DNA from: Schizochytrium sp. TIO01
Taxonomy: Eukaryota > Protista > Bigyra: Labyrinthulomycetes
Reading direction: 5' to 3'
DNA: 64,000 nt
Assembly (NCBI GenBank): GCA_004764695.1
Contig: SMSO01000004.1
Span: 1,798,001 to 1,862,000, forward strand
Within the stretch, counting starts at the first letter, position 1; every line of letters starts with the position of its first letter. A program made the translations under genes and the position numbers. Shown here one piece after another: positions 3-13,032 of this stretch. The notes below the pieces were generated by a model. It ran no database searches and had not been told where the DNA came from. It saw nothing but the letters and a program-made list of their open reading frames with translations.

Positions 3-890
3 GGCTATGGCGGCTACGATGGTGCCGGAAACGATGGTGGCTTTATGAATGATGGGAACGATGCTAGCCAAGGTTCACCTTCCTCAAAGCGGAGTAAAAT
101 TGAGTACCTAGTTCCCGTTACGATTCGTCAAATGATCGAGGCTGTAGAGGTGCCTGAGTCAGGTTTTTCGATTGATGGTAGGCCCGTGAACAAGATCTGC
201 TGTGTTGGTAAGGTTATGATGTACGTCAAGAAGCAATCAAACTTCGAGGTAGAAATTGAAGACTCCACTGGCAACTTTCGTGCGCAAAAGTGGTTTACTG
301 GTACCGGCGAAGAGGTAGCTGAGTACCCCGTAGGTTCCATGGTCATGATCCATGGTAACTTGCGCTCATTTGGAGGCAAGCGCAATCTGAGCGCGTTTTC
401 TGTGCGACTTATTGAGGACTACAACATTCTGACACACCACTTTCTCGAAGCCATGCTCACACACCTTCAGGTTACTCAGGGACCTGTGAACAAGGCCTTA
501 CGCAACGCTGTTGCTGGAGGCGCCATGATGCAACAGCAGAACCCTGCAGATAACTATGGTTCATCACACAGCGGCATGGACTCCTCCTATGGACAGTCTG
601 GCCTTGACCCATCAATGAATATGGGCCAATCTTTGACTAGTGCTAATGTCAATGCCGGCCAGGGTGACGGTGGTGACCTGCCTGCGCAAGCCCTCCGCGT
701 CTTCAATACGCCGGAGGCCGCTGAACTTGAGGAAGGCTACACTCCAGAACAAGTGTTGCAGATCATGCAGGGTCAAGGCTCCAGTGTGAACATCCAGCAG
801 ATTATCAATGCCATCTCTGTGCTTACGAACGAGGGTCACCTCTATTCTACCATCGATGACAACCACTACAAGTCAACTGGTGAGGGCTAG
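3..890 (+). CDS. RPA2: Replication protein A 32-kDa subunit (RPA2/RPA32), 5'-truncated by the window edge
   Basis: The frame is open from nt 3 (GYGGYDGAGNDGGFM..., a typical Gly/Tyr-rich RPA32 N-terminus). It contains an OB fold (LVPVTIRQM...IEDSTG...VMIHGNLRSFGGKRNLSAFSVRLIEDYNILTHHFLEAM) and a C-terminal winged-helix motif (LTNEGHLYSTIDDNHYKST). Confidence 0.93.
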   Translation, partial: GYGGYDGAGNDGGFMNDGNDASQGSPSSKRSKIEYLVPVTIRQMIEAVEVPESGFSIDGRPVNKICCVGKVMMYVKKQSNFEVEIEDSTGNFRAQKWFTGTGEEVAEYPVGSMVMIHGNLRSFGGKRNLSAFSVRLIEDYNILTHHFLEAMLTHLQVTQGPVNKALRNAVAGGAMMQQQNPADNYGSSHSGMDSSYGQSGLDPSMNMGQSLTSANVNAGQGDGGDLPAQALRVFNTPEAAELEEGYTPEQVLQIMQGQGSSVNIQQIINAISVLTNEGHLYSTIDDNHYKSTGEG

Positions 891-1516: not shown

Positions 1517-4500
1517 TCATTTGCGTTTCGAAGCTGCTGTGGAAAACCCAAAGGGTCTTGTTGGGGTAGCTCCTGTGCTCGGAGTAGGCGCACTAGTTCT
1601 CCTAATACACTCTGCTCTCTCATGAAGCTCACGGTCCTCTTCGCGTATTTCTTCCCCACAACCTAATGAGCACAAGACAATGCGTTTAGGACACTCACGT
1701 CGCTCGTGCCGCTTTAATTTCTCCGCCGGCATCGTAGCGTTACATCCGAGACCACACCATGCAATGCGTTTTCGGCATTCATATTTTTCGTGTGTCTCTA
1801 ATTCATCAAACGGCATCATTTTTGGACACCCAACACGACAACATACCAGTCGTTTGGTGCAAGAATAACGTTTGTGGTGATCTAGTAGCGCGAGTGGAAC
1901 TTTTTCACCACATCCTGAACCACAGGCAACAAGTCTCCGGTCACACTCTTCCTCTAGGTGATATTGAAGGTGCTTTTGCCTAAGACGATCATCAAGACCG
2001 GCCTTGGGACCATCAAACGTGTTCGAGAGGCGACACCCATTGTTTGGGCACCACACAATACGCTCAGCACATTCTGTATCCATGTGGCGTTCCATATCTG
2101 CCAGAGGAACCTTCAAACGACAGCCCAGCTCACATTTTACAAAACGTCGTTTGCACTCTGACTGTAAGTGATTTTTGAGATTCTGTGCTTCTACAAAGTC
2201 TTTGCAGTGGTTTGGGCAGTCAACGGGCCGCCTCGGGCATGCTTTAAGCTCATGGGCAAAGCGATCCTTGTATTTTGCACCTTCTTTACACTTCCATCGA
2301 CAAGGCACAATCCTTGAACTACAACGCAATTGCTCATGACTATCACGAAGTCGTGCGACCAATTCTTTTCCACAACCGGGAATTCGACACCGGACTAGGC
2401 GTTCAGGACAAAGCTTGCGGCGGTGCTCAGAATATTTACACCAAGGAAGTACTGCTCCGCAACCATTCTCACATGTTTGCGCACGCATTGGACAATCGGA
2501 CTTGTCATGCACATGCATTTTTTCCAAAATCACCATTTCGTTGCATCGAAGACAGGGAATTCGGCGTTTTATACAGCAATAGTCAACATGCCATTGCTTG
2601 GTGCATGCTTTGACATCACTAGCTCCGCATCCATTTGGGCAAGTCTCTGGCCGTTGAGGGCAAATACTCGTCATGTGTTCTTTCAGCTCTTCTGCCCACA
2701 TACCAGTTATGCCACATTTATATGGACATTCAACTATGCGCTTGGGACACAGATGATTTTCATGATACACAACGTAGTCAGAATCCTTCTCCTTCTCAAT
2801 CTCTGCTCTTGTCATCGTGCGTGAGAAGAATGACTTTGGTAAGACACGAAGCTTGGCTCCGCAGCCCCATCCGCAAACAACCACTTGGTTTGCTTGGCCG
2901 CGTTGAGCAACAGCATCTCCAAGATTGCCATATTTAACTTGTGCTAGTTGTCTAACAACTTCCACAAAGTTACTCCCACGAGCCCTTTCAATGGCTGTTT
3001 TCCCATAGATATCTTGGCGGTTTAAGTCTGCACCGTGCTCCAACAAAAGCCTGCACGCCTCCCATTTGCCGGCTGCTGCAGCATGGATGAGTGCTGTTTT
3101 GCCATCTTGTAAAACTTGATCGGGAATGGCACCTCGCTTCAAAAGGGCTTCCATAACGTTTATTCGTCCGGCCTTACTTGCCATCGAGAGTGGTGTGTGC
3201 ATAATGTGCGTTTCGCGATTTACATTCGGCGATTTATTGGGCAAATCCAGTAGCAACTCAACAGCAAGAACCTGCTCATTGTCTTTATTCACAGCTTCTG
3301 TGCCTCTCCAGGAAGCATAAGTGAGTGCGGTATGACCTTCTGGTGTTTCGTAGTCTATGGTTGCGCCTGTTTCAACAAGGAGAACGATTTTCTCGAAGTC
3401 CTCGACAAGAATGGCTTCTCCCATGCTCTTATTGAGCTTTCGCATCTTATCAATTTCCTGTTCTCGCTGCTTCTTTTGAAGTGCTTGCTCGCGCAATGCT
3501 TCACAATGCTCAATATGCTTTTGTTTCTCTCTTTCAACGAATCGAAGGGTGTCTTCATTTGCACCAGACTTATCCCACCCGACGCCGTGTTTCCAAGAAA
3601 AACACCCTTGATATTTAACACCTGCTTGGGCTACATCTAGTGTTGTCTTCACGGGCTTGCGCTCCTCCGGGAGTTCTGTAATTTCGTGGCCTAACAGTTG
3701 CAAGCGTAGAATTTCTTCCTCTGGAAGCTCTTCAACTGCATAGATAGTTGGATGCCCACGTTTAAATCTCGCATTTATATGATTCCATGGTGTTGGAAAG
3801 CGATACGGAATAGGTCCCACAGGGAATACAGAACTCTCTCGGTGAATACGGGCTCCCCGGAGTATCAAAAGCCGAGCGCACTCATAATGACCATTGTAAA
3901 TAGCATGTGAGAGAGGAGTTCGGCTAGTTTGACGCCAATGACGGTGCTTTGACGCAAGCTTCTTCACTTGGAAAAGAAAAATCAAATCTTCGTTCCGAAA
4001 TTGGCTTGCAAGAGCGCGTGACCATGGTGGGCGGTGCTTTCTTCGCAAATAGTGCTTGACAACAATCTGTGCGAGCCTGATTGCCACATCGCGATGCTCG
4101 TCTTCGTATTCGACAGCAGCACCGCGCTCTAAAAGTAACTCTACAACGCGGACATCACCATACATAGCCGCCCATGACAAAGCACAGTGACCAGCGGATG
4201 ATCGGGCAGATAGAAGTCGAACACAATTGAGTTGAGAGCGTGTATCCTTCAGAGTCTTTGTTTTTTCATCAAGCTCGCTAACAACATCCTCAAGGGGGAC
4301 TGACGCTGCCAAGACTTTGCTTTCCGCGAAGCGACACTGATGGCTAGCCTCATCTACTTTCAGCTGAAGCTTATTTAGTGCAAGTCTTAAAGCGCTTATC
4401 TCTTTGCGATTCGGTAGCAACACCGCATGTACAACATGGTGTTTGGTTGCAGCTGCATGTGCCCATATATTCATGGCATCAAGCAACTTCAAGCGACCCG

Positions 4501-7500
4501 AGCTATCGCTATCATTATCTTGGTCATCTTCTAAATTCTTTTGTTCTTGTTGTCTTGACTGAGGTCTTTTGCTGTTTTGATGGCCCTTTGCGCTTTCTTG
4601 AGAATCAGGAACATGTAAGCTTGTAGCCATTGCACACATAGCAGCAAAGCTTGACCCATTTCTTTCGAGTCCTTGATCGATCGCTTCAATCAAATTCTTG
4701 CTTCGAGCGACCGCCATGGCATCTATTCGACCATTGTTTAGAATCATTAGCAGTCTTCTCTTCAGATTCTGATCGCGCACTAACTGCTGACGACCAATGT
4801 TCCAATAGTTATTGATCACAATACTTGTTCGAATAGTATCCCGTTCCTTCAACGGTTCAATATTCAAGAGAGTGCACATGAGCTGCATTACTAAGTGCAT
4901 GTCTTGTGTTGGCTCTGTAATTGCATCTAGCTCACGAAAGTCTTCGCGTCCAACGAAATGTAGAGCACGAGTTGCCGCAGACACTAGAGGTTCCATTTCT
5001 TCTGTCTCTGCATAAGTACATGCTTGCTCGAGCTCTGTGATGCGTCCCTCCAAAGACTTGAACTCGTCGAGAAGGTCTTGTAAAATCCTCGAGCGACGTT
5101 CAAATCCAGGCAGTGCAGCAGTTTGCTGAGTTTCTAACTCTTCGCGCATGGTTTCCAGTGTTCGAATTCGCTCATCAAGCTCAATGCACTGGTTGTGCAA
5201 TATTGTCTTTTGATCAGGGAAATGAGGCAATCCCAATGCGAGCAAATTGTCAAGAGGCTCCAGTTCGCATAACATGATATTACGGAACAGAGATGCTAAG
5301 TCACGACGGAATGAGCTTGCCAGTTCTAACTTATCAACAAGGGTTTTATTGCCAAGGCGCTGAGCTAGACCAATAGGCGTCAGTGCATTTTTGCTGGCTT
5401 CATCAATTGAGACGCCATGTTCAATAAGGAATTCAACAACTTCAACATGTCCATGCATGATTGCTTGAAGCAATGGCGTGTGACCTCTAGAGGTTTCGCG
5501 ATTAAGATCAGCGCCCTTTTCTGTTAAAAAATGCAAAATCTCGAGTTGACCGTGCATTGCTGCACGAGTGATTGGTGAATGGCCAACACGGGACTCTATG
5601 GCCAAAATCTCAGCCAACTGCGCTCTTTTACACCTTGCTTCTTCCGCCCGGTCCATGGGTTTATCGTAGGCTTCTCTCGGTAAATTTTCAATCATGGAGA
5701 TGATTGTTTGTGCAAGCGCCAGCTCACCTTTTCCACATGCGTAAGATAAGCAAGACTCTTGATGTTCTTCGCACACGACAAGTCGCGCGGCTCCACGTTC
5801 AATATCACTTGTGAGCCAGGAGCGTAACGATCGTGTGCATGCTGCACTATCGGCACCGCATGGGATCTTGCGATTGTGGCAAACTTGTAGATGACTCTCA
5901 AGTTGCTCAGCTCGAACTATATCGCCACAAGAGTTTGGGCAAACCATAGGTCGTCTTCGGCATTCATGCTCCTCATGATGGCGCCGTCGACTCCACCTCA
6001 CATCAAGACCACATCCTTGTCTGCAATCCTCTACACGATTATCACAAAACTTGACTTCGTGAATTTCCATTTCATCATCAGCAACAAGCTGCCGACAACC
6101 AAGAGGGCACCAGCGCTTTCGTTTGGGGCAAACAGAAGCTTGATGCTTGGCAATTTCGTCTAAGGGAAATGTTTCTCCACACTCACATAGTGTAGGTCTG
6201 CGTGAGCAAGTTTCAACTTTGTGGGTAGAAATTTCTCTGAATGTACATACCTTCACGAGTCCACATTGAGGGCAATCTACAAGGCGGAGAGGGCACTCAT
6301 CATTCTCATGCTTAGGCTGCTCTTCAGCCCACATGCGCTCGATCCCACACCCAAACTGACACTGGACTTCTCGTTTGGGGCATGCATGTTCAAGGTGGTC
6401 TTCCATCTTACGTCGTTCAATATAAGCACCGCATCCAAGTAAGCAACGAACTTTGGCAGCTTCACAATCAACGGTGGCGTGTGTTGGCAAAGCAATCTTA
6501 TCGATCCATTCACCACAACTACATTTCACCTTCTGAAATTGACATTCGGTATTTTCATGGCGCCAAAGGTTGCAATGCAAAGTCTCGGTCCCACAACCCG
6601 GGTTACTACACCTAACAACACGTCGGATACAACCTTGCTGTAAATGGGTATCAAGCTGCTCCTCTTGCATAACCTGGCCACACTGATTTGGACACTGAAG
6701 ATGGCGTTTTGGGCACTCTAAACCAATGTGCTTCAGGCGATCACATGCTTTCATAGTCCCGCAGGTCCAACCCGCAAGATCCATGGGCTCGACATCAGAA
6801 AGAGGCCCGGCTGGGTCACCAAAGATACCTTCAATATGGTTTTTGCCATCGTTGGCTGGTCGAACCGTATGTTTCCCCGAGTCAGCATCAAAAGATAGAA
6901 CAAATCCAACCTGGCGTCCTTGGTCAAAACGAACACGTCTTCCAACATAATCCAAGAGACATGGTAAAACGCGATTTGGGCATGTTCCTGATTCATGCAT
7001 AACGTGAGCTTGAACATGCTGAATTTCCATAACTTCGCTACAACCGAGAGGACATGGTACAGGCCTCCTGAAGCATTCATTTGCTTCGTGTTGGGCCATA
7101 TGTTGGGCTTGTATATCTGGTGTTCCACAATCGTACCGACATTTAATTATGCGCCGTTCACAAAAGTGACATTCATGGACCTGTCGACGATCAAGTGGCC
7201 CGAGTACAATACCACAACCCAGACTGCATGGTTGTTTACAAAAATTATCCTCGTGCTCGTTCCTCTCAACAAATCGAAGACGGAGGCCACACCCTACACG
7301 ACAAGTTACGTAACGATTTGGACACGCATGTGCGCGATGTGCAGCAAGCTTATTCCATTCCATGTAAGATCCACAACCCTCGTGTGTGGATGTGGTTGTG
7401 CACTGGACAACCCGAAGTGGGCAGTCTGAATTTTCATGTTCTGCTAGGTGACGATGTTGTAAAAGTTCTCCGCAACCAAGTCTACATTCGCGAGAACGGA

Positions 7501-9073
7501 ACTCACACTTATGAATTTCATGTGACCCAATGTCCTCCTGTCTCATTTTGACTTTGCAACCTCGATACACGTTACAGCATAGTACAATTCTACGTGAACA
7601 TTCGTGTTCTAAGTGGTGCTGCATCTCTGATGCAGAAACTTGCGCTCCACATTCTCGGTCACACTGAATGATGCGTTTCGGGCAATCCCAATACTCATGC
7701 CTGCTTATTCGATCTACTCGATCTCGGAACCCACATCCATTTTTGCATTCTCTCGGGGCTTTTGCTTGAGCTTCTGACCTAAGACGCTCTTTTCGTGCAT
7801 CAACACGTTGATGTGCCTCCAAGAGAACCTCTTGCACATCGGTATCACCCATTAACTTTGCATACTCTGCAGCATCACGCCCACTAGCATCTTTTGCCAT
7901 TATGAGATCAAGAAAAAAAACTCCCCAGTCTTTGTACTTTTCGACACTATCCATGTCTGTAATCTGAACGTCAACCGCTGTTAGAAGGTCATCACGGTGT
8001 CGCATAGCCAAGTCCAAAGCGTGGTCGATAATAAGCATGGCCACACGACTGTGACCATTGGTGATAGCATACATGAGCGGGGTCTTGCGCTCTTTTAGAG
8101 TACGGTGCTCTAAATCTGCACCTTGAGCAATTAGATTCTGTACTGCATCATACTGGCCACATGCTGCTGCCCAGCTAAGCGCCGAATGACCTCCTGTAAG
8201 GGACGAGAGATTGATGTCCGCACCGTGATGCAGCAATAAGCTCAGGAGCTCAAGGTGGTTCGCTGCTGCTGCGCGATGCAGCGCTGTCATCCCACCTTCA
8301 ATTGTGGTATTTAAATAATACGTATCAAAGTTTTGTACATTTGATTTTTGAAGCTCTTGGGGCTCGTGGCTTTGGTCCAATAGTTTTTGTCGTTCGCGCA
8401 CAGCTCTGTCAAAAGTATGTCTAGATTGCTTACATTCTACAACAAGAGAAAATATTTCTTCGAGGTTGTTTTCGCGTATATGGCTACGGATGATATCTGT
8501 AAGTCTGTTATTCTCTGCAAATATGTTTGCATCAAGCTTTTTCCTACGTGCCATGTCAGCAAGTCGACGGCGTTGCCACCCAAGCTCTGAATTCACAGCT
8601 TCTTCTAGCAGATGTGCGCATACTTTATGACGAGCCATGCGAGCCCAGTCAAGGGCAGAGCGCCCAGCTACATCTTTGCGAAAGACGTCAACATTTTGAG
8701 TATCCAACAAAGTCTGTACAACTTTATCATGCCCACCAGCTGCGGCTTTCATGAGTCCTGACCTTCCAGCTTGGTTAGCGTGGTCTGGAGCAGCTCCATG
8801 TTGTAGTAGTGCTTTCACAACACTAAGTTCCCCTGCGCCGCAGGCCTTAGTGAGTAAGGTTTCTTCACCTGGACATCGCTGATCAGGATCAACTTCGCCA
8901 GCGTCTACCATCCATAGTGCTTCTTCGAAGTCATACCTCGCAACTAGTTGTTCAAACTGCTTTTTCTCCCTAGGTCCTGTTTCGAGCCTCTTTATTGACG
9001 GCGAGCATACTCCATCTCGATTCTGCTCTTCTATGGCAGGGACAGCGATAGTCTCAGCCTCCTCCTCGTGCAT
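1517..9073 (-). CDS. Giant multidomain protein: ankyrin repeats, ~34 TRAF-type zinc fingers in two arrays, and a dynein-stalk/MTBD-like coiled-coil insert
   Basis: Uninterrupted ORF; first ATG at 9073 (the track start at 9154 is TTG). Ankyrin motifs include GMTALHRAAAANHLELLSLLLHHGADIN, GHTPLLQAIMHGHVEVVEFLIEHG and GKTALIHAAAAGKWEACRLLLEHGADLN. Repeated C-x2-4-C-x11-12-H-x3-4-C-(P)xR units: about 20 at ~5850-7750 and about 14 at ~1600-2880. Coiled coil plus MTBD-like segment at ~4220-5215. No RING or MATH domain seen. Confidence 0.9.
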   Translation of the reverse strand: MHEEEAETIAVPAIEEQNRDGVCSPSIKRLETGPREKKQFEQLVARYDFEEALWMVDAGEVDPDQRCPGEETLLTKACGAGELSVVKALLQHGAAPDHANQAGRSGLMKAAAGGHDKVVQTLLDTQNVDVFRKDVAGRSALDWARMARHKVCAHLLEEAVNSELGWQRRRLADMARRKKLDANIFAENNRLTDIIRSHIRENNLEEIFSLVVECKQSRHTFDRAVRERQKLLDQSHEPQELQKSNVQNFDTYYLNTTIEGGMTALHRAAAANHLELLSLLLHHGADINLSSLTGGHSALSWAAACGQYDAVQNLIAQGADLEHRTLKERKTPLMYAITNGHSRVAMLIIDHALDLAMRHRDDLLTAVDVQITDMDSVEKYKDWGVFFLDLIMAKDASGRDAAEYAKLMGDTDVQEVLLEAHQRVDARKERLRSEAQAKAPRECKNGCGFRDRVDRISRHEYWDCPKRIIQCDRECGAQVSASEMQHHLEHECSRRIVLCCNVYRGCKVKMRQEDIGSHEIHKCEFRSRECRLGCGELLQHRHLAEHENSDCPLRVVQCTTTSTHEGCGSYMEWNKLAAHRAHACPNRYVTCRVGCGLRLRFVERNEHEDNFCKQPCSLGCGIVLGPLDRRQVHECHFCERRIIKCRYDCGTPDIQAQHMAQHEANECFRRPVPCPLGCSEVMEIQHVQAHVMHESGTCPNRVLPCLLDYVGRRVRFDQGRQVGFVLSFDADSGKHTVRPANDGKNHIEGIFGDPAGPLSDVEPMDLAGWTCGTMKACDRLKHIGLECPKRHLQCPNQCGQVMQEEQLDTHLQQGCIRRVVRCSNPGCGTETLHCNLWRHENTECQFQKVKCSCGEWIDKIALPTHATVDCEAAKVRCLLGCGAYIERRKMEDHLEHACPKREVQCQFGCGIERMWAEEQPKHENDECPLRLVDCPQCGLVKVCTFREISTHKVETCSRRPTLCECGETFPLDEIAKHQASVCPKRKRWCPLGCRQLVADDEMEIHEVKFCDNRVEDCRQGCGLDVRWSRRRHHEEHECRRRPMVCPNSCGDIVRAEQLESHLQVCHNRKIPCGADSAACTRSLRSWLTSDIERGAARLVVCEEHQESCLSYACGKGELALAQTIISMIENLPREAYDKPMDRAEEARCKRAQLAEILAIESRVGHSPITRAAMHGQLEILHFLTEKGADLNRETSRGHTPLLQAIMHGHVEVVEFLIEHGVSIDEASKNALTPIGLAQRLGNKTLVDKLELASSFRRDLASLFRNIMLCELEPLDNLLALGLPHFPDQKTILHNQCIELDERIRTLETMREELETQQTAALPGFERRSRILQDLLDEFKSLEGRITELEQACTYAETEEMEPLVSAATRALHFVGREDFRELDAITEPTQDMHLVMQLMCTLLNIEPLKERDTIRTSIVINNYWNIGRQQLVRDQNLKRRLLMILNNGRIDAMAVARSKNLIEAIDQGLERNGSSFAAMCAMATSLHVPDSQESAKGHQNSKRPQSRQQEQKNLEDDQDNDSDSSGRLKLLDAMNIWAHAAATKHHVVHAVLLPNRKEISALRLALNKLQLKVDEASHQCRFAESKVLAASVPLEDVVSELDEKTKTLKDTRSQLNCVRLLSARSSAGHCALSWAAMYGDVRVVELLLERGAAVEYEDEHRDVAIRLAQIVVKHYLRRKHRPPWSRALASQFRNEDLIFLFQVKKLASKHRHWRQTSRTPLSHAIYNGHYECARLLILRGARIHRESSVFPVGPIPYRFPTPWNHINARFKRGHPTIYAVEELPEEEILRLQLLGHEITELPEERKPVKTTLDVAQAGVKYQGCFSWKHGVGWDKSGANEDTLRFVEREKQKHIEHCEALREQALQKKQREQEIDKMRKLNKSMGEAILVEDFEKIVLLVETGATIDYETPEGHTALTYASWRGTEAVNKDNEQVLAVELLLDLPNKSPNVNRETHIMHTPLSMASKAGRINVMEALLKRGAIPDQVLQDGKTALIHAAAAGKWEACRLLLEHGADLNRQDIYGKTAIERARGSNFVEVVRQLAQVKYGNLGDAVAQRGQANQVVVCGWGCGAKLRVLPKSFFSRTMTRAEIEKEKDSDYVVYHENHLCPKRIVECPYKCGITGMWAEELKEHMTSICPQRPETCPNGCGASDVKACTKQWHVDYCCIKRRIPCLRCNEMVILEKMHVHDKSDCPMRAQTCENGCGAVLPWCKYSEHRRKLCPERLVRCRIPGCGKELVARLRDSHEQLRCSSRIVPCRWKCKEGAKYKDRFAHELKACPRRPVDCPNHCKDFVEAQNLKNHLQSECKRRFVKCELGCRLKVPLADMERHMDTECAERIVWCPNNGCRLSNTFDGPKAGLDDRLRQKHLQYHLEEECDRRLVACGSGCGEKVPLALLDHHKRYSCTKRLVCCRVGCPKMMPFDELETHEKYECRKRIAWCGLGCNATMPAEKLKRHERRECPKRIVLCSLGCGEEIREEDRELHERAECIRRTSAPTPSTGATPTRPFGFSTAASKRK

Positions 9074-9865
9074 CTCGCTGAGCAATACCAAGTGCGCCAC
9101 ATGCACAAGCTGCGATTTAGTTGACTCTTCGCTGCCCCTTCCCGAATCCCCCAACCCAAGTTTGCCTCACACACGCAACTTATCTATCACTGACCCCTTT
9201 AAACATTCAATACAGTTCATTCCTGTAGCAGCAAATTGAGGAAAGCGGGTATGAATAAGTAAGCATATAAACAAACAAGCCCAAATTGTAGTCATGGCAA
9301 ACTTAATACTATCACTCACACAACAAATCCATATACATATAATGACAGGCATCAGAGGCTTTCATACTATTTACCTCCCTCTCCATCGCTCTCTTCCCTT
9401 ATAATCATTGACTTAGCCTCGCTCAGTTCTATCCTCTAAGTCCTTTCCCCAGAACGGAATCTCAATGCTTTGACGCAGAGTGCCGTTGAGCCGGTTGTGC
9501 TTCTGCGTTATCCTACTATGGAGATTAAGAGTCTTTTACACGTTCCCTGGAGAGGAGCACTAGGAGGGATTAGGCTAATTCTCCTATCTATCTGTCTGTT
9601 AGATTGCTCTTTTCATTCATTAAATGAAAATAGTGATATATAATTTGCTATATTAATTTTATTACGTATAAAGTATTATAGTGTTTCATTTGATTTGTAT
9701 GAGTTTTGGTTCATGGAGTACTATTTCTGGGTTCTGACGGCACTGGGCTGGCAGAGCGGCAAGTGAGAGAACTTTGGGAGGTCCGAAGCCTGTTGGGTAT
9801 AAGGGGCAGTATCAGGCACCTTGGTGAGTGGCTTGAAGAAAGGTTTCCTTGCGCGCTGTGGCAGG

Positions 9866-10174
9866 ATGACGGACAGCGTAACGGAATGGAGGCACATGTG
9901 GGGCGCCAAGGTGAGCGTACCGTGCGATATGGACATGGATCAGCTGAAGAACACCGTGGAAAAAGCCAAAGAAGTTCTGAAAGACCTCTCTCCTGGATCA
10001 GAACCTTCACAGGACCATGCAGCAGAGATCAAGAACTTCTGTGACGACTGCTACGGGAGGAGTTGGCAAGTAGTTGTGGGACGCCACTTTGGAGTTCATG
10101 CCATTCATGACGTCAAACACTTTGCCTTCTTCTACATTGGGGAGGCTGCCGTTCTTGTTCTGCGAACACAGTGA
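9866..10174 (+). CDS. Dynein light chain, LC8/type-1 family (divergent, possibly an axonemal paralogue)
   Basis: 102 aa from the ATG at 9866. LC8 signature: DM...AAEIKNFCDDCYGRSWQVVVGRHFGVHAIHDVKHFAFFYIGEAAVLVLRT, compared with canonical [51 protein letters not shown]. Confidence 0.9.
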   Translation: MTDSVTEWRHMWGAKVSVPCDMDMDQLKNTVEKAKEVLKDLSPGSEPSQDHAAEIKNFCDDCYGRSWQVVVGRHFGVHAIHDVKHFAFFYIGEAAVLVLRTQ

Positions 10175-10863: not shown

Positions 10864-12534
10864 TCAATTGGTTTTAATGCGTTTCGTAGAAGGCCGAAAA
10901 AATGAGTCCAAGCGAGCTTGCTGGCCTCTACCCGGTGACACCAAATTCTGCGCAGTTTGTTCATTAGCAAGAGTGCGGTATTCCTCAAGCTTGGTCTTGA
11001 TTTTGTGCATGTTGACATTTCTAGGGCGGATCTTACCATATCGAGCAATATCGCTGTGCGGTTTATCGAAAAGACCAAGGCACCAACCCAAACCTGCGTA
11101 GCTAGGCGGTGAGAGGCCATCAAGCGCAAATTTATCATTTAGATGCACAAGCTTATGCATAGTATCTTCAGCACCATGCGACCATGCGATGATAGCTCGT
11201 CCCCAGGACATTCGACAGTTATTATGTAGTTCACCCGTAGCTTCAAGGAAACGTTGCATCTCATTCCACACTACGCTGTCAGTTTGACATCTTTCAAGTT
11301 CGTCAATTGTGTATTCGGTCTTTGGGTCCCCGGCGTGCTTGTCAAGTGTTGTTCGTGACCACTCTGGGAGTGCAGTATGGGAGTGTGGTGGCTGCGGAGA
11401 ATAGTATGCATGGTTATATGAAACCCCCCTCCACTTATAGAATTCATCAAGATATTTTCTCTTTCCATCGCTTGATGGTAAGCCTTCGAGGTCGCGCGCA
11501 AGGCGGAATGGGCTTACCATACCAAAGTTTAGATATGCCGACATACGAGAGCAGCCGTATTTGAAATGGTGCATGGGATCTGTGCGGCGAGTATGGTACG
11601 TAGATAGACCTTTGGCAAGAAATTGCGCCCAGCGATCATAACCCCTTGTACTGCCACCACGCGAGATGTTGGGAACGGGCTTGACGGTCTGATCAGCACC
11701 TTGGTGGCTTCTGACGTAGGCTTCTATATCAAGAGTTTGAAGGTCATCAGCTGAAAGGAGATCCGGGTTCGATTTGGCATCGGTTACGAAGCCCATGAGG
11801 CCTTTTATGTGCTGTGTTGTCGCCTCTTTAGTATTACGTAGGGGGACCAAGATGTCATCCTCAATAATTTTTGCAGAGGCAATTCGGCTGAAGTGAAGAG
11901 CTTCTTTGCGGCGACCTGATACTGCACGTTCAAAGTGAAATGCGCGTTCATAGTGTTTCCCAGCTACAGCAGCTGGCACGATACATGAGGTGTCAACCTG
12001 CCAGAACTGTTTTGCTGCACCCCGTATCTTAGCCACTACATCTGTAAAGGGTGCTACAAAGGGTTCATCTGTGACTACAAGGCGCGCCTTAGCTGCAAGA
12101 GAGAGGTGCGCCGGTCGTCGACGGCCAGGGTGAGTAACAAGTGCAAAGAACTGAATTTTACCTCCAGATTCTCGCTCAACTTCTTTTGCCATTTCTCGAA
12201 TGCCCTCAAGTGCAAACTGTAGACGGCGAGCTGTAAAGTGCTTCGTTGTATCGAGTACGGGTGCAACCACAACCAGAGGTAATCCTAACTTTTGAGCCGC
12301 CATTCTAGCTGCAAGTAATCCAGGGTTCTCGTGTCCACGCAGCGCAACGATAGGGACATATAACACAAAACCTTCACATGCACTTGTAGCTGGGGACGAT
12401 TTTGGAGATGGATTTTTGGCTACTGCCCGAATCCTCTGCTTAAGAAATGGCACTTCGTTTTCGACGCTAAGTCGGAGGTCTCTTTGAGGGAGCTTCACAG
12501 AGCTTAGTTGCCTGGGATCTTCCTCATGAGCCAT
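10864..12534 (-). CDS. Class II CPD photolyase-like flavoprotein (photolyase/cryptochrome family) with C-terminal PIP-box-like motif and basic tail
   Basis: First ATG at 12534 (the track start at 12606 is GTG). Motifs: VLYVPIVALRGHENPGL, TARRLQFALEG, SRMSAYLNFGMVSP, GELHNNCRMSWG and LNDKFALDGLSPPSYAGLGWCLGLFDKP, compared with class II LNDKYxLDGRDPNGYxGIxWxxGxHDRP. Confidence 0.85.
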   Translation of the reverse strand: MAHEEDPRQLSSVKLPQRDLRLSVENEVPFLKQRIRAVAKNPSPKSSPATSACEGFVLYVPIVALRGHENPGLLAARMAAQKLGLPLVVVAPVLDTTKHFTARRLQFALEGIREMAKEVERESGGKIQFFALVTHPGRRRPAHLSLAAKARLVVTDEPFVAPFTDVVAKIRGAAKQFWQVDTSCIVPAAVAGKHYERAFHFERAVSGRRKEALHFSRIASAKIIEDDILVPLRNTKEATTQHIKGLMGFVTDAKSNPDLLSADDLQTLDIEAYVRSHQGADQTVKPVPNISRGGSTRGYDRWAQFLAKGLSTYHTRRTDPMHHFKYGCSRMSAYLNFGMVSPFRLARDLEGLPSSDGKRKYLDEFYKWRGVSYNHAYYSPQPPHSHTALPEWSRTTLDKHAGDPKTEYTIDELERCQTDSVVWNEMQRFLEATGELHNNCRMSWGRAIIAWSHGAEDTMHKLVHLNDKFALDGLSPPSYAGLGWCLGLFDKPHSDIARYGKIRPRNVNMHKIKTKLEEYRTLANEQTAQNLVSPGRGQQARLDSFFRPSTKRIKTN

Positions 12535-13032
12535 CGTCACAAGCACAACTTGTTTGCAAGGAGGTCTTGATCCCACGTCGAGATCTGTGTTTGATAGCCC
12601 GCCCACAGCAGCTTAGTCGGCCTCCCGTGCCTCTCCGCTATTGAGGCAAGCTCCCTAAAAGGGTTTTAGTTTCTCGCCCTTCCGCTTCGTCTCTGATGTT
12701 CCCGTTGAAGATCTTGCACTATCAGAAAACAAGAACGAAACCAAATAATAAAAAAAGCACAAGTGAAAAGGAAGAAATAAAGTATCTCAGTTTGGGTTCT
12801 AGGAATCTAATATCCTAAAGAGACACGGCCCAGACCGGCATAGAGAACAGCTTCTTCTCTTCTAGAGCAGCATTTGCCTCAGTAGTAATAGGCGCAGGAG
12901 GCTTTCTTTGATTTCCCTATGTCAGTCAACCAATTTGCCATTCGAACTAACAAAGACTTTTGTGCTTTGTCCCTATAATATATTTCTTTCTTCTTCTTGC
13001 CAAGAAAAGCTTTCAAGTTTAGCCCAGTCATA

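Follow-up and report, generated by a model that had tools for sequence, protein, structure and literature searches.

The stalk of the dynein heavy chain and the microtubule-binding domain (MTBD) at its tip are normally treated as parts of a motor, in which ATP-driven sliding of the two stalk helices sets the affinity for microtubules. The locus described here raises the question of whether such a stalk can be carried by a protein that has no motor and, if so, what it might do there. The locus lies in a stretch of 64,000 nucleotides (referred to as the window) from the labyrinthulomycete Schizochytrium sp. TIO01, contig SMSO01000004.1, positions 1,798,001 to 1,862,000. An earlier note, made from the sequence alone, had proposed that window positions 4220-5215 encode a dynein stalk, consisting of an outgoing coiled-coil helix (CC1), the MTBD and a returning coiled-coil helix (CC2), placed between the ankyrin repeats of a giant TRAF-zinc-finger protein. 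All the peptides quoted in that note were found in the minus-strand frame of the open reading frame at 1517-9154, where 4220-5215 corresponds to amino acids (aa) 1314-1645. The proposed dynein stalk pattern was borne out by three kinds of search (phmmer against the PDB, phmmer against 1.84e9 proteins, and hhalign). The position of the module between ankyrin repeats was confirmed as well, and it is conserved in a second species.

Homology of the module to the dynein stalk

The stalk segment without its ankyrin flank was compared with the PDB using phmmer, and all 16 matches at E<=1 were dynein heavy chains matched at the MTBD, the best being 8glv_JG (1.9e-5) and the MTBD of DNAH9 (2rr7, 1.2e-4). 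With a two-member family profile (hmmsearch) only dyneins were found in the same database, the best at 5.2e-9. When 1.84 billion representative proteins were scanned with phmmer without a filter, 13 matches were obtained in all, of which three were relatives with ankyrin repeats and zf-TRAF domains, one was a generic coiled-coil protein and nine were other proteins. Six of these nine were scanned with Pfam (the three shortest, P0011-P0013, were left out) and every one was a dynein fragment carrying PF12777, the Pfam MT family, with a best E-value of 2.7e-8. When the four-member family was aligned by hhalign with the 17 clean dynein stalks of the genome itself, the match spanned CC1, the MTBD and CC2 and reached a probability of 98-99%, with E-values of 5e-14 (local) and 2e-17 (global). 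The top clusters in a protein-atlas comparison also all carried PF12777, at scores of at most 0.89 that serve as a lead only. Based on these sequence comparisons, the homology of the segment to the stalk and MTBD of dynein heavy chains is confirmed, and the module is very probably dynein-derived.

The homology region covers aa 1315-1649 (window 4208-5212, minus strand) and was divided into the following parts:

4991..5212, minus strand: CC1, the outgoing stalk helix (aa 1315-1388, 74 residues), from the AlphaFold2 (AF2) helix and from the hhalign and hmmsearch (against PDB) alignments to dynein CC1
4616..4990, minus strand: MTBD helices H1-H5 (aa 1389-1513), from phmmer against the PDB and alignment with the genome's own dyneins
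4808..4858, minus strand: flap-length segment between H2 and H3 (aa 1433-1449), from alignment with the own dyneins
4505..4615, minus strand: low-complexity, net acidic insert between H5 and H6 (aa 1514-1550, 37 residues, net charge -4), specific to the family
4412..4504, minus strand: MTBD helix H6 (aa 1551-1581), with Trp 1564 and the second proline, 1581, at its end, from the alignments
4208..4411, minus strand: CC2, the returning stalk helix (aa 1582-1649, 68 residues), from the AF2 helix

Both prolines that delimit the MTBD are present in the window protein, at aa 1389 (start of H1-H5) and aa 1581 (end of H6), and so are both tryptophans, at aa 1451 in H3 and aa 1564 in H6, in agreement with the earlier note. 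The same order of CC1, six-helix head and CC2 in an antiparallel hairpin is found in the stalks of dynein heavy chains, above all in flap-bearing, single-headed inner-arm dyneins of the DNAH7/DNAH3/DNAH12 type (structures compared: 8i3j, 6rza, 2rr7, 3wuq), which also have in common with the window protein the proline at the CC1/H1 border, the Trp and basic residue of H3, the Trp of H6 and the flap length. Unlike these dyneins, the window protein has no AAA+ ring, linker or tail, and its stalk is shortened by about a quarter, without the motif at the base of CC2 that enters AAA5 in dyneins. Its head has degenerate helices H4-H6, the 37-residue acidic insert and a score below the Pfam model. Judged from the residue counts, the module would correspond to the distal three quarters or so of a dynein stalk, with about 65-74 residues per strand and a length of roughly 10 nm.

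A structure of aa 1285-1645 was predicted with AF2 from the family alignment only, and both structure models used here were made with a four-sequence alignment. The segment model contains two long helices (segment residues 31-119 and 267-360) with a predicted local distance difference test score (pLDDT) above 90, and a disordered insert (residues 230-268) with a pLDDT below 50. In a Foldseek search of the PDB roughly the first 20 places were all taken by dynein stalks (8i3j at 4e-5; 3wuq), and the structural alignments obtained with VIA-align gave Z-scores of 15.7 for 8i3j (268 of 277 residues aligned), 15.1 for 3wuq and 14.4 for 5ayh. Unrelated coiled-coil hairpins reached a Z-score of at most 13.1, so that the margin in favor of dynein is modest, as the long helices lead one to expect. 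However, the dynein stalk structures are covered almost completely, and in combination with the sequence comparisons this speaks for a hairpin in which CC1 and CC2 run antiparallel and the MTBD forms a small helical head at the tip. Thus, the structural check suggested in the earlier note (AlphaFold followed by Foldseek) yielded a helical hairpin with dynein stalks as top matches and a head of low pLDDT. In the second AF2 model, a 671-residue one that includes the surrounding sequence, CC2 is the helix at 421-520 and residues 1-155 superpose on four-repeat ankyrin domains with a root-mean-square deviation of 1.6-2.0.

The protein that carries the stalk

The module is part of one stop-free frame of 7.6 kb, which encodes 2545 aa (stop included) with the first Met at aa 28 (window 9073). 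Its main features are:

1517..9154, minus strand: the giant frame, with ankyrin repeats, two TRAF-type zinc-finger arrays and the stalk module
5855..7747, minus strand: TRAF-type zinc-finger array 1 (aa 470-1100), from Pfam zf-TRAF and a pattern count
5219..5767, minus strand: ankyrin block before the stalk (aa 1130-1312), with Pfam Ank matches at 1184-1258
4106..4204, minus strand: first ankyrin repeat after the stalk (aa 1651-1683), from Pfam Ank, Ank_2 and Ank_3 matches and DARPin matches in the PDB
1595..2872, minus strand: TRAF-type zinc-finger array 2 (aa 2095-2520), from the best Pfam zf-TRAF stretch (2304-2357) and the pattern count

Ankyrin repeats were found on both sides of the stalk module by Pfam and in the larger AF2 model, and the C-terminal end of the block before the stalk is a degenerate helix pair that runs into CC1. 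The tandem 33-residue repeats place the giant protein among ankyrin-repeat proteins (Pfam Ank_2, E = 2.4e-78, 11 stretches). Pfam zf-TRAF (PF02176) matched the whole protein at E = 4.8e-57 in 13 stretches, and beyond fingers and ankyrin repeats the Pfam scan showed nothing notable. The zinc-finger pattern gave 26 non-overlapping matches, some of them merged, which corresponds to about 30-35 fingers in two arrays and makes the earlier figure of about 34 a reasonable one. TRAF proteins combine a RING domain and zinc fingers with a C-terminal MATH/TRAF-C domain; neither RING nor MATH/TRAF-C was among the Pfam matches of the giant protein, which has only the zf-TRAF part of this set. With TRAF-type zinc-finger array proteins (PF02176) it thus has tandem TRAF-type fingers in common, whereas it differs from them in the lack of RING and MATH/TRAF-C, in the far larger number of fingers and in the added ankyrin blocks and stalk.

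A dynein heavy chain has six AAA+ modules with Walker motifs, a linker and a tail, and the giant protein does not have this composition. No AAA+ domain, dynein heavy-chain (DHC) family or dynein tail was among the Pfam matches of the 2545-aa frame and no Walker A pattern was found in it, as the earlier note had stated. The genes close to the giant gene are:

45-887, plus strand: RPA2-like gene (RPA_C and OB fold), a neighbor on the strand opposite to the giant gene, unrelated to dynein
9821-10174, plus strand: gene for an LC8-type dynein light chain (Pfam Dynein_light, E = 7.9e-19)
10864-12606, minus strand: gene for a weakly photolyase-like protein, a neighbor unrelated to dynein

Since the giant gene is bounded by the RPA2-like and LC8 genes on the opposite strand, no motor or AAA modules are hidden in neighboring exons. 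The LC8 gene is transcribed divergently, in a head-to-head arrangement, and some 650-750 nt separate it from the start of the giant gene. A motif scan of the giant protein found no TQT-type LC8-binding motif.

The likely donor dynein and other non-motor MTBD proteins

Between H2 and H3, DNAH7 has an insert of about 13 residues, the flap, with which it can touch a neighboring protofilament (PMC6629372). The window protein has an H2-H3 insert of flap length, which is the feature of the DNAH7-type inner-arm subgroup. When the window segment and the family hidden Markov model (HMM) were scored against the genome's own dyneins, the six highest-scoring ones were exactly the six that bear a flap. The best of them, L009, is a single-headed inner-arm dynein of the DNAH7/DNAH3/DNAH12 type (phmmer 1e-11 with Z=1e6; BLASTP 8e-16, 29% identity and 55% positives over 112 aa). 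In the alignment, the flap segment of the window family is gap-free only with L004-L006 and L008-L010; the other 11 own dyneins are gapped or unaligned over this segment, and L016 and L017 carry longer inserts that are differently placed. In a tree that included the long paralogues the family was monophyletic on a very long branch with an unresolved position. After removal of these paralogues it joined the flap-bearing clade at a support of 35. Because this support is weak, the inner-arm origin is based on the score ranking and the common flap, from which a flap-bearing DNAH7-type inner-arm dynein is the likely donor.

A genome-wide search with Pfam PF12777 (64 Mb, 37 contigs) detected about 18 dynein stalks and, in addition, three long frames that have an MTBD head and no AAA+ domains:

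G000:C24:2699037-2706812, minus strand: L029, 2592 aa, with a canonical flap-less MT match (E = 4e-13, aa 661-773), IQ, SAM and Ank domains and no AAA+
G000:C34:2640792-2644838, plus strand: L030, 1349 aa, with a partial MT match (E = 3.4e-6, aa 546-636) as its sole Pfam match
G000:C33:1531156-1538229, minus strand: L031, 2358 aa, with an MTBD-like head (E = 2e-4) and p25-alpha, IQ, WW and TPR domains

L029 and L030 reach the PF12777 cut-off and L031 (21 bits, hmmscan) falls just under it. The p25-alpha domain that adjoins the head in L031 is a tubulin-polymerisation-promoting (tubulin-binding) domain, and the L029 family is kept in Hondaea fermentalgiana (P0019, named 'Ankyrin repeat domain-containing protein 27') and in metagenomes. 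These three proteins resemble the window protein in that they are long, come from the same lineage and have a dynein-type MTBD head without AAA+. They differ from it in the flap, which is absent from L029 and L030 and represented by a partial flap-length segment in L031, whereas the window protein has the full length. They also have no long coiled-coil hairpin, and the own-dynein HMM reaches CC2 only in the family of the window protein. From these alignments, the window family is the only one of these non-motor MTBD proteins with a true long stalk.

The earlier note knew of no characterised protein of this kind. A search of the open-access full-text literature turned up no account of an MTBD of the dynein type in anything but dynein heavy chains. 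The arrangement is not unique, however, since L029, L030 and L031 are three further motor-less proteins of this genome with an MTBD head. The domain itself is known; what is new to the searched literature is its combination with ankyrin repeats and zinc fingers and its use without a motor.

Three further observations were made during the PF12777 searches. The metagenome protein P0007 (610 aa, on a 2.4-kb contig) has two PF12777 stretches without an AAA_8 match, and could represent either a fragment or a further stalk protein without a motor whose heads are arranged in tandem. Among the genome's own dynein stalks, L018 (G000:C35:2216361-2217347, minus strand) has an in-frame TAG inside its PF12777 match, for which a sequencing error, the edge of an intron or a broken gene could be the reason. 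At L013/L020 (G000:C34:2188892-2189880, minus strand) the PF12777 match is in two abutting pieces (1-104 and 103-337) in separate frames, which suggests an intron or a frameshift at the border between CC1 and MTBD.

A possible microtubule tether or remodelled spacer

That the gene is an artefact, be it a chimera of the assembly, a pseudogene in decay or a pair of transcripts taken as one reading frame, is extremely improbable. No public run that holds the locus is recorded as RNA, so that more than one transcript is conceivable, but the 7.6-kb frame is free of stops, and the order of domains is kept in Hondaea fermentalgiana. There the protein P0002 (named 'Ankyrin repeat domain-containing protein 50' in its source) is collinear, with an identity of 60% over 1835 aa that falls to 49-51% in the stalk. 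Because of this collinearity the gene is not an assembly chimera, the outcome that the earlier note had named as a refutation. The two metagenome relatives P0003 and P0004 have the same architecture as the giant protein, and a metagenome locus of the family (L032) begins about 74 nt before the gene. Contigs assembled independently from four public runs of three studies are collinear with positions 3300-9250 without joints, and there are individual contigs that extend from one flank of the stalk to the other. Among the 26 differences between strains 18 are synonymous and 8 non-synonymous. Six of the strain variants fall in the stalk segment, four of them synonymous, and the two non-synonymous ones (aa 1505 and 1522) are in or just before the low-complexity insert. 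That the likeness is convergent, a generic antiparallel coiled-coil hairpin having acquired an unrelated helical tip, is likewise very unlikely and is already disfavored by the searches above. For this explanation speak the Z-scores of 10-13 that generic coiled-coil hairpins reach against the model, the low pLDDT of the head and the missing PF12777 match; against it, the sequence matches fall in the globular head as well as in the coils, the matches among solved structures are dyneins alone, those among the 1.84e9 proteins are dynein stalk fragments apart from the three relatives and the one coiled-coil protein, hhalign gives 98-99%, and the delimiting prolines, both tryptophans and the flap length are common to dyneins.

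The window protein is a non-motor scaffold of ankyrin repeats and TRAF zinc-finger arrays that carries a dynein-type stalk and MTBD, and it probably acts as a passive microtubule tether. Its gene very probably captured, at some time, the distal three quarters of the stalk of a dynein heavy chain together with its MTBD. The antiparallel hairpin leaves and re-enters the chain between ankyrin repeats and would project the helical head at its tip about 10 nm from the ankyrin platform, where it might dock on the tubulin lattice via H1, H3 and the flap. As there is no AAA+ ring to slide CC1 against CC2, binding would be static or constitutive, without a nucleotide cycle and possibly tuned by the acidic H5-H6 insert. 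Such a tether would hold the partners of the ankyrin repeats and zinc fingers at a fixed distance from cytoplasmic microtubules or those of the zoospore axoneme. A similar arrangement has been engineered in chimeras of seryl-tRNA-synthetase and the MTBD (SRS-MTBD), which fix the stalk registry (PMC6629372). In these chimeras, too, a stalk and MTBD stand on an unrelated globular base without a motor, and the base, not ATP, sets the registry of CC1 and CC2. They are laboratory constructs, whereas the window gene is natural and conserved, and the registry of its stalk would decide between high and low affinity.

Several results weigh against the tether or against the dynein origin on which it builds. 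Neither the whole giant protein nor the segment gave an hmmscan match to Pfam MT (PF12777) at E<=1, and the gathering threshold of 24 bits was not reached; the relative P0003 also gave no PF12777 match at E<=0.01. The profile check suggested in the earlier note therefore failed, and the homology is visible only by phmmer and profile-profile methods. Since these methods are clear, the missing Pfam match does not weigh against the homology itself. The pLDDT of the head is only 50-70, so that the MTBD fold is argued from homology and not from a confident model, and the tree gave the low support mentioned above. We also examined the 27 positions of the MTBD at which the genome's own dyneins show a conservation of 75% or more. 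At these positions the window protein is identical at 11 and keeps the residue class at 6, while 10 are lost, mostly in the degenerate H4-H6. In the family H4-H5 is variable, with a partial deletion in P0003, and Pro 1581 is kept by the window protein and its Hondaea counterpart but not by P0003 and P0004. The acidic insert beside H6 could repel the acidic surface of the microtubule.

These features of the head are what the main rival to the tether builds on, namely that the dynein-derived module no longer binds microtubules and is a rigid spacer with a remodelled head, which has either a different partner or none. To the lost positions, the partial deletion in P0003, the unconserved second proline and the family-specific insert (5-8% identity within the family) can be added that several lysines of dynein H1 are replaced by acidic or neutral residues in the alignment of the window family. 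The constraint on the head is nevertheless uneven. Compared with the other family members, the window protein has its two best-kept parts in H1-H3 (58/36/40% identity) and CC2 (65/37/40%), and within the head the microtubule-facing H1, H3 and flap are kept best. The Arg at position 1455, which corresponds to the conserved Lys of H3, is invariant in the family, as is Pro 1389, and the net charge of the head is close to that of a real DNAH7-type MTBD of the genome. Moreover, the sister non-motor MTBD proteins join the head to other tubulin-related domains. The microtubule-facing elements thus appear to be the constrained ones, which favors kept binding; the acidic insert and the remodelling at the back of the head would nevertheless allow the function to have changed. 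Weighing this pattern, we regard the rigid spacer as possible but doubtful, and the head may well still bind microtubules.

A more far-reaching scenario would be that the stalk-MTBD escaped from the motor in labyrinthulomycetes and became a reusable microtubule-docking cassette, present in at least four unrelated non-motor proteins. In the window protein, where the full hairpin and the flap are kept, the registry switch might then still work, gated not by ATP but by ligand or force through the ankyrin base, possibly as an anchor specific to the doublets of the zoospore flagellum. We consider this unlikely as a whole. As a conserved protein with stalk and tip but no motor, the window protein is the natural counterpart of the synthetic SRS-MTBD chimeras, and it would demonstrate that the module can fold, and probably function, alone. 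It also makes it possible to study what the flap and the stalk registry contribute when there is no ring. Thraustochytrids are organisms of biotechnological interest, and the finding hints that this lineage has its own family of scaffolds anchored to microtubules.

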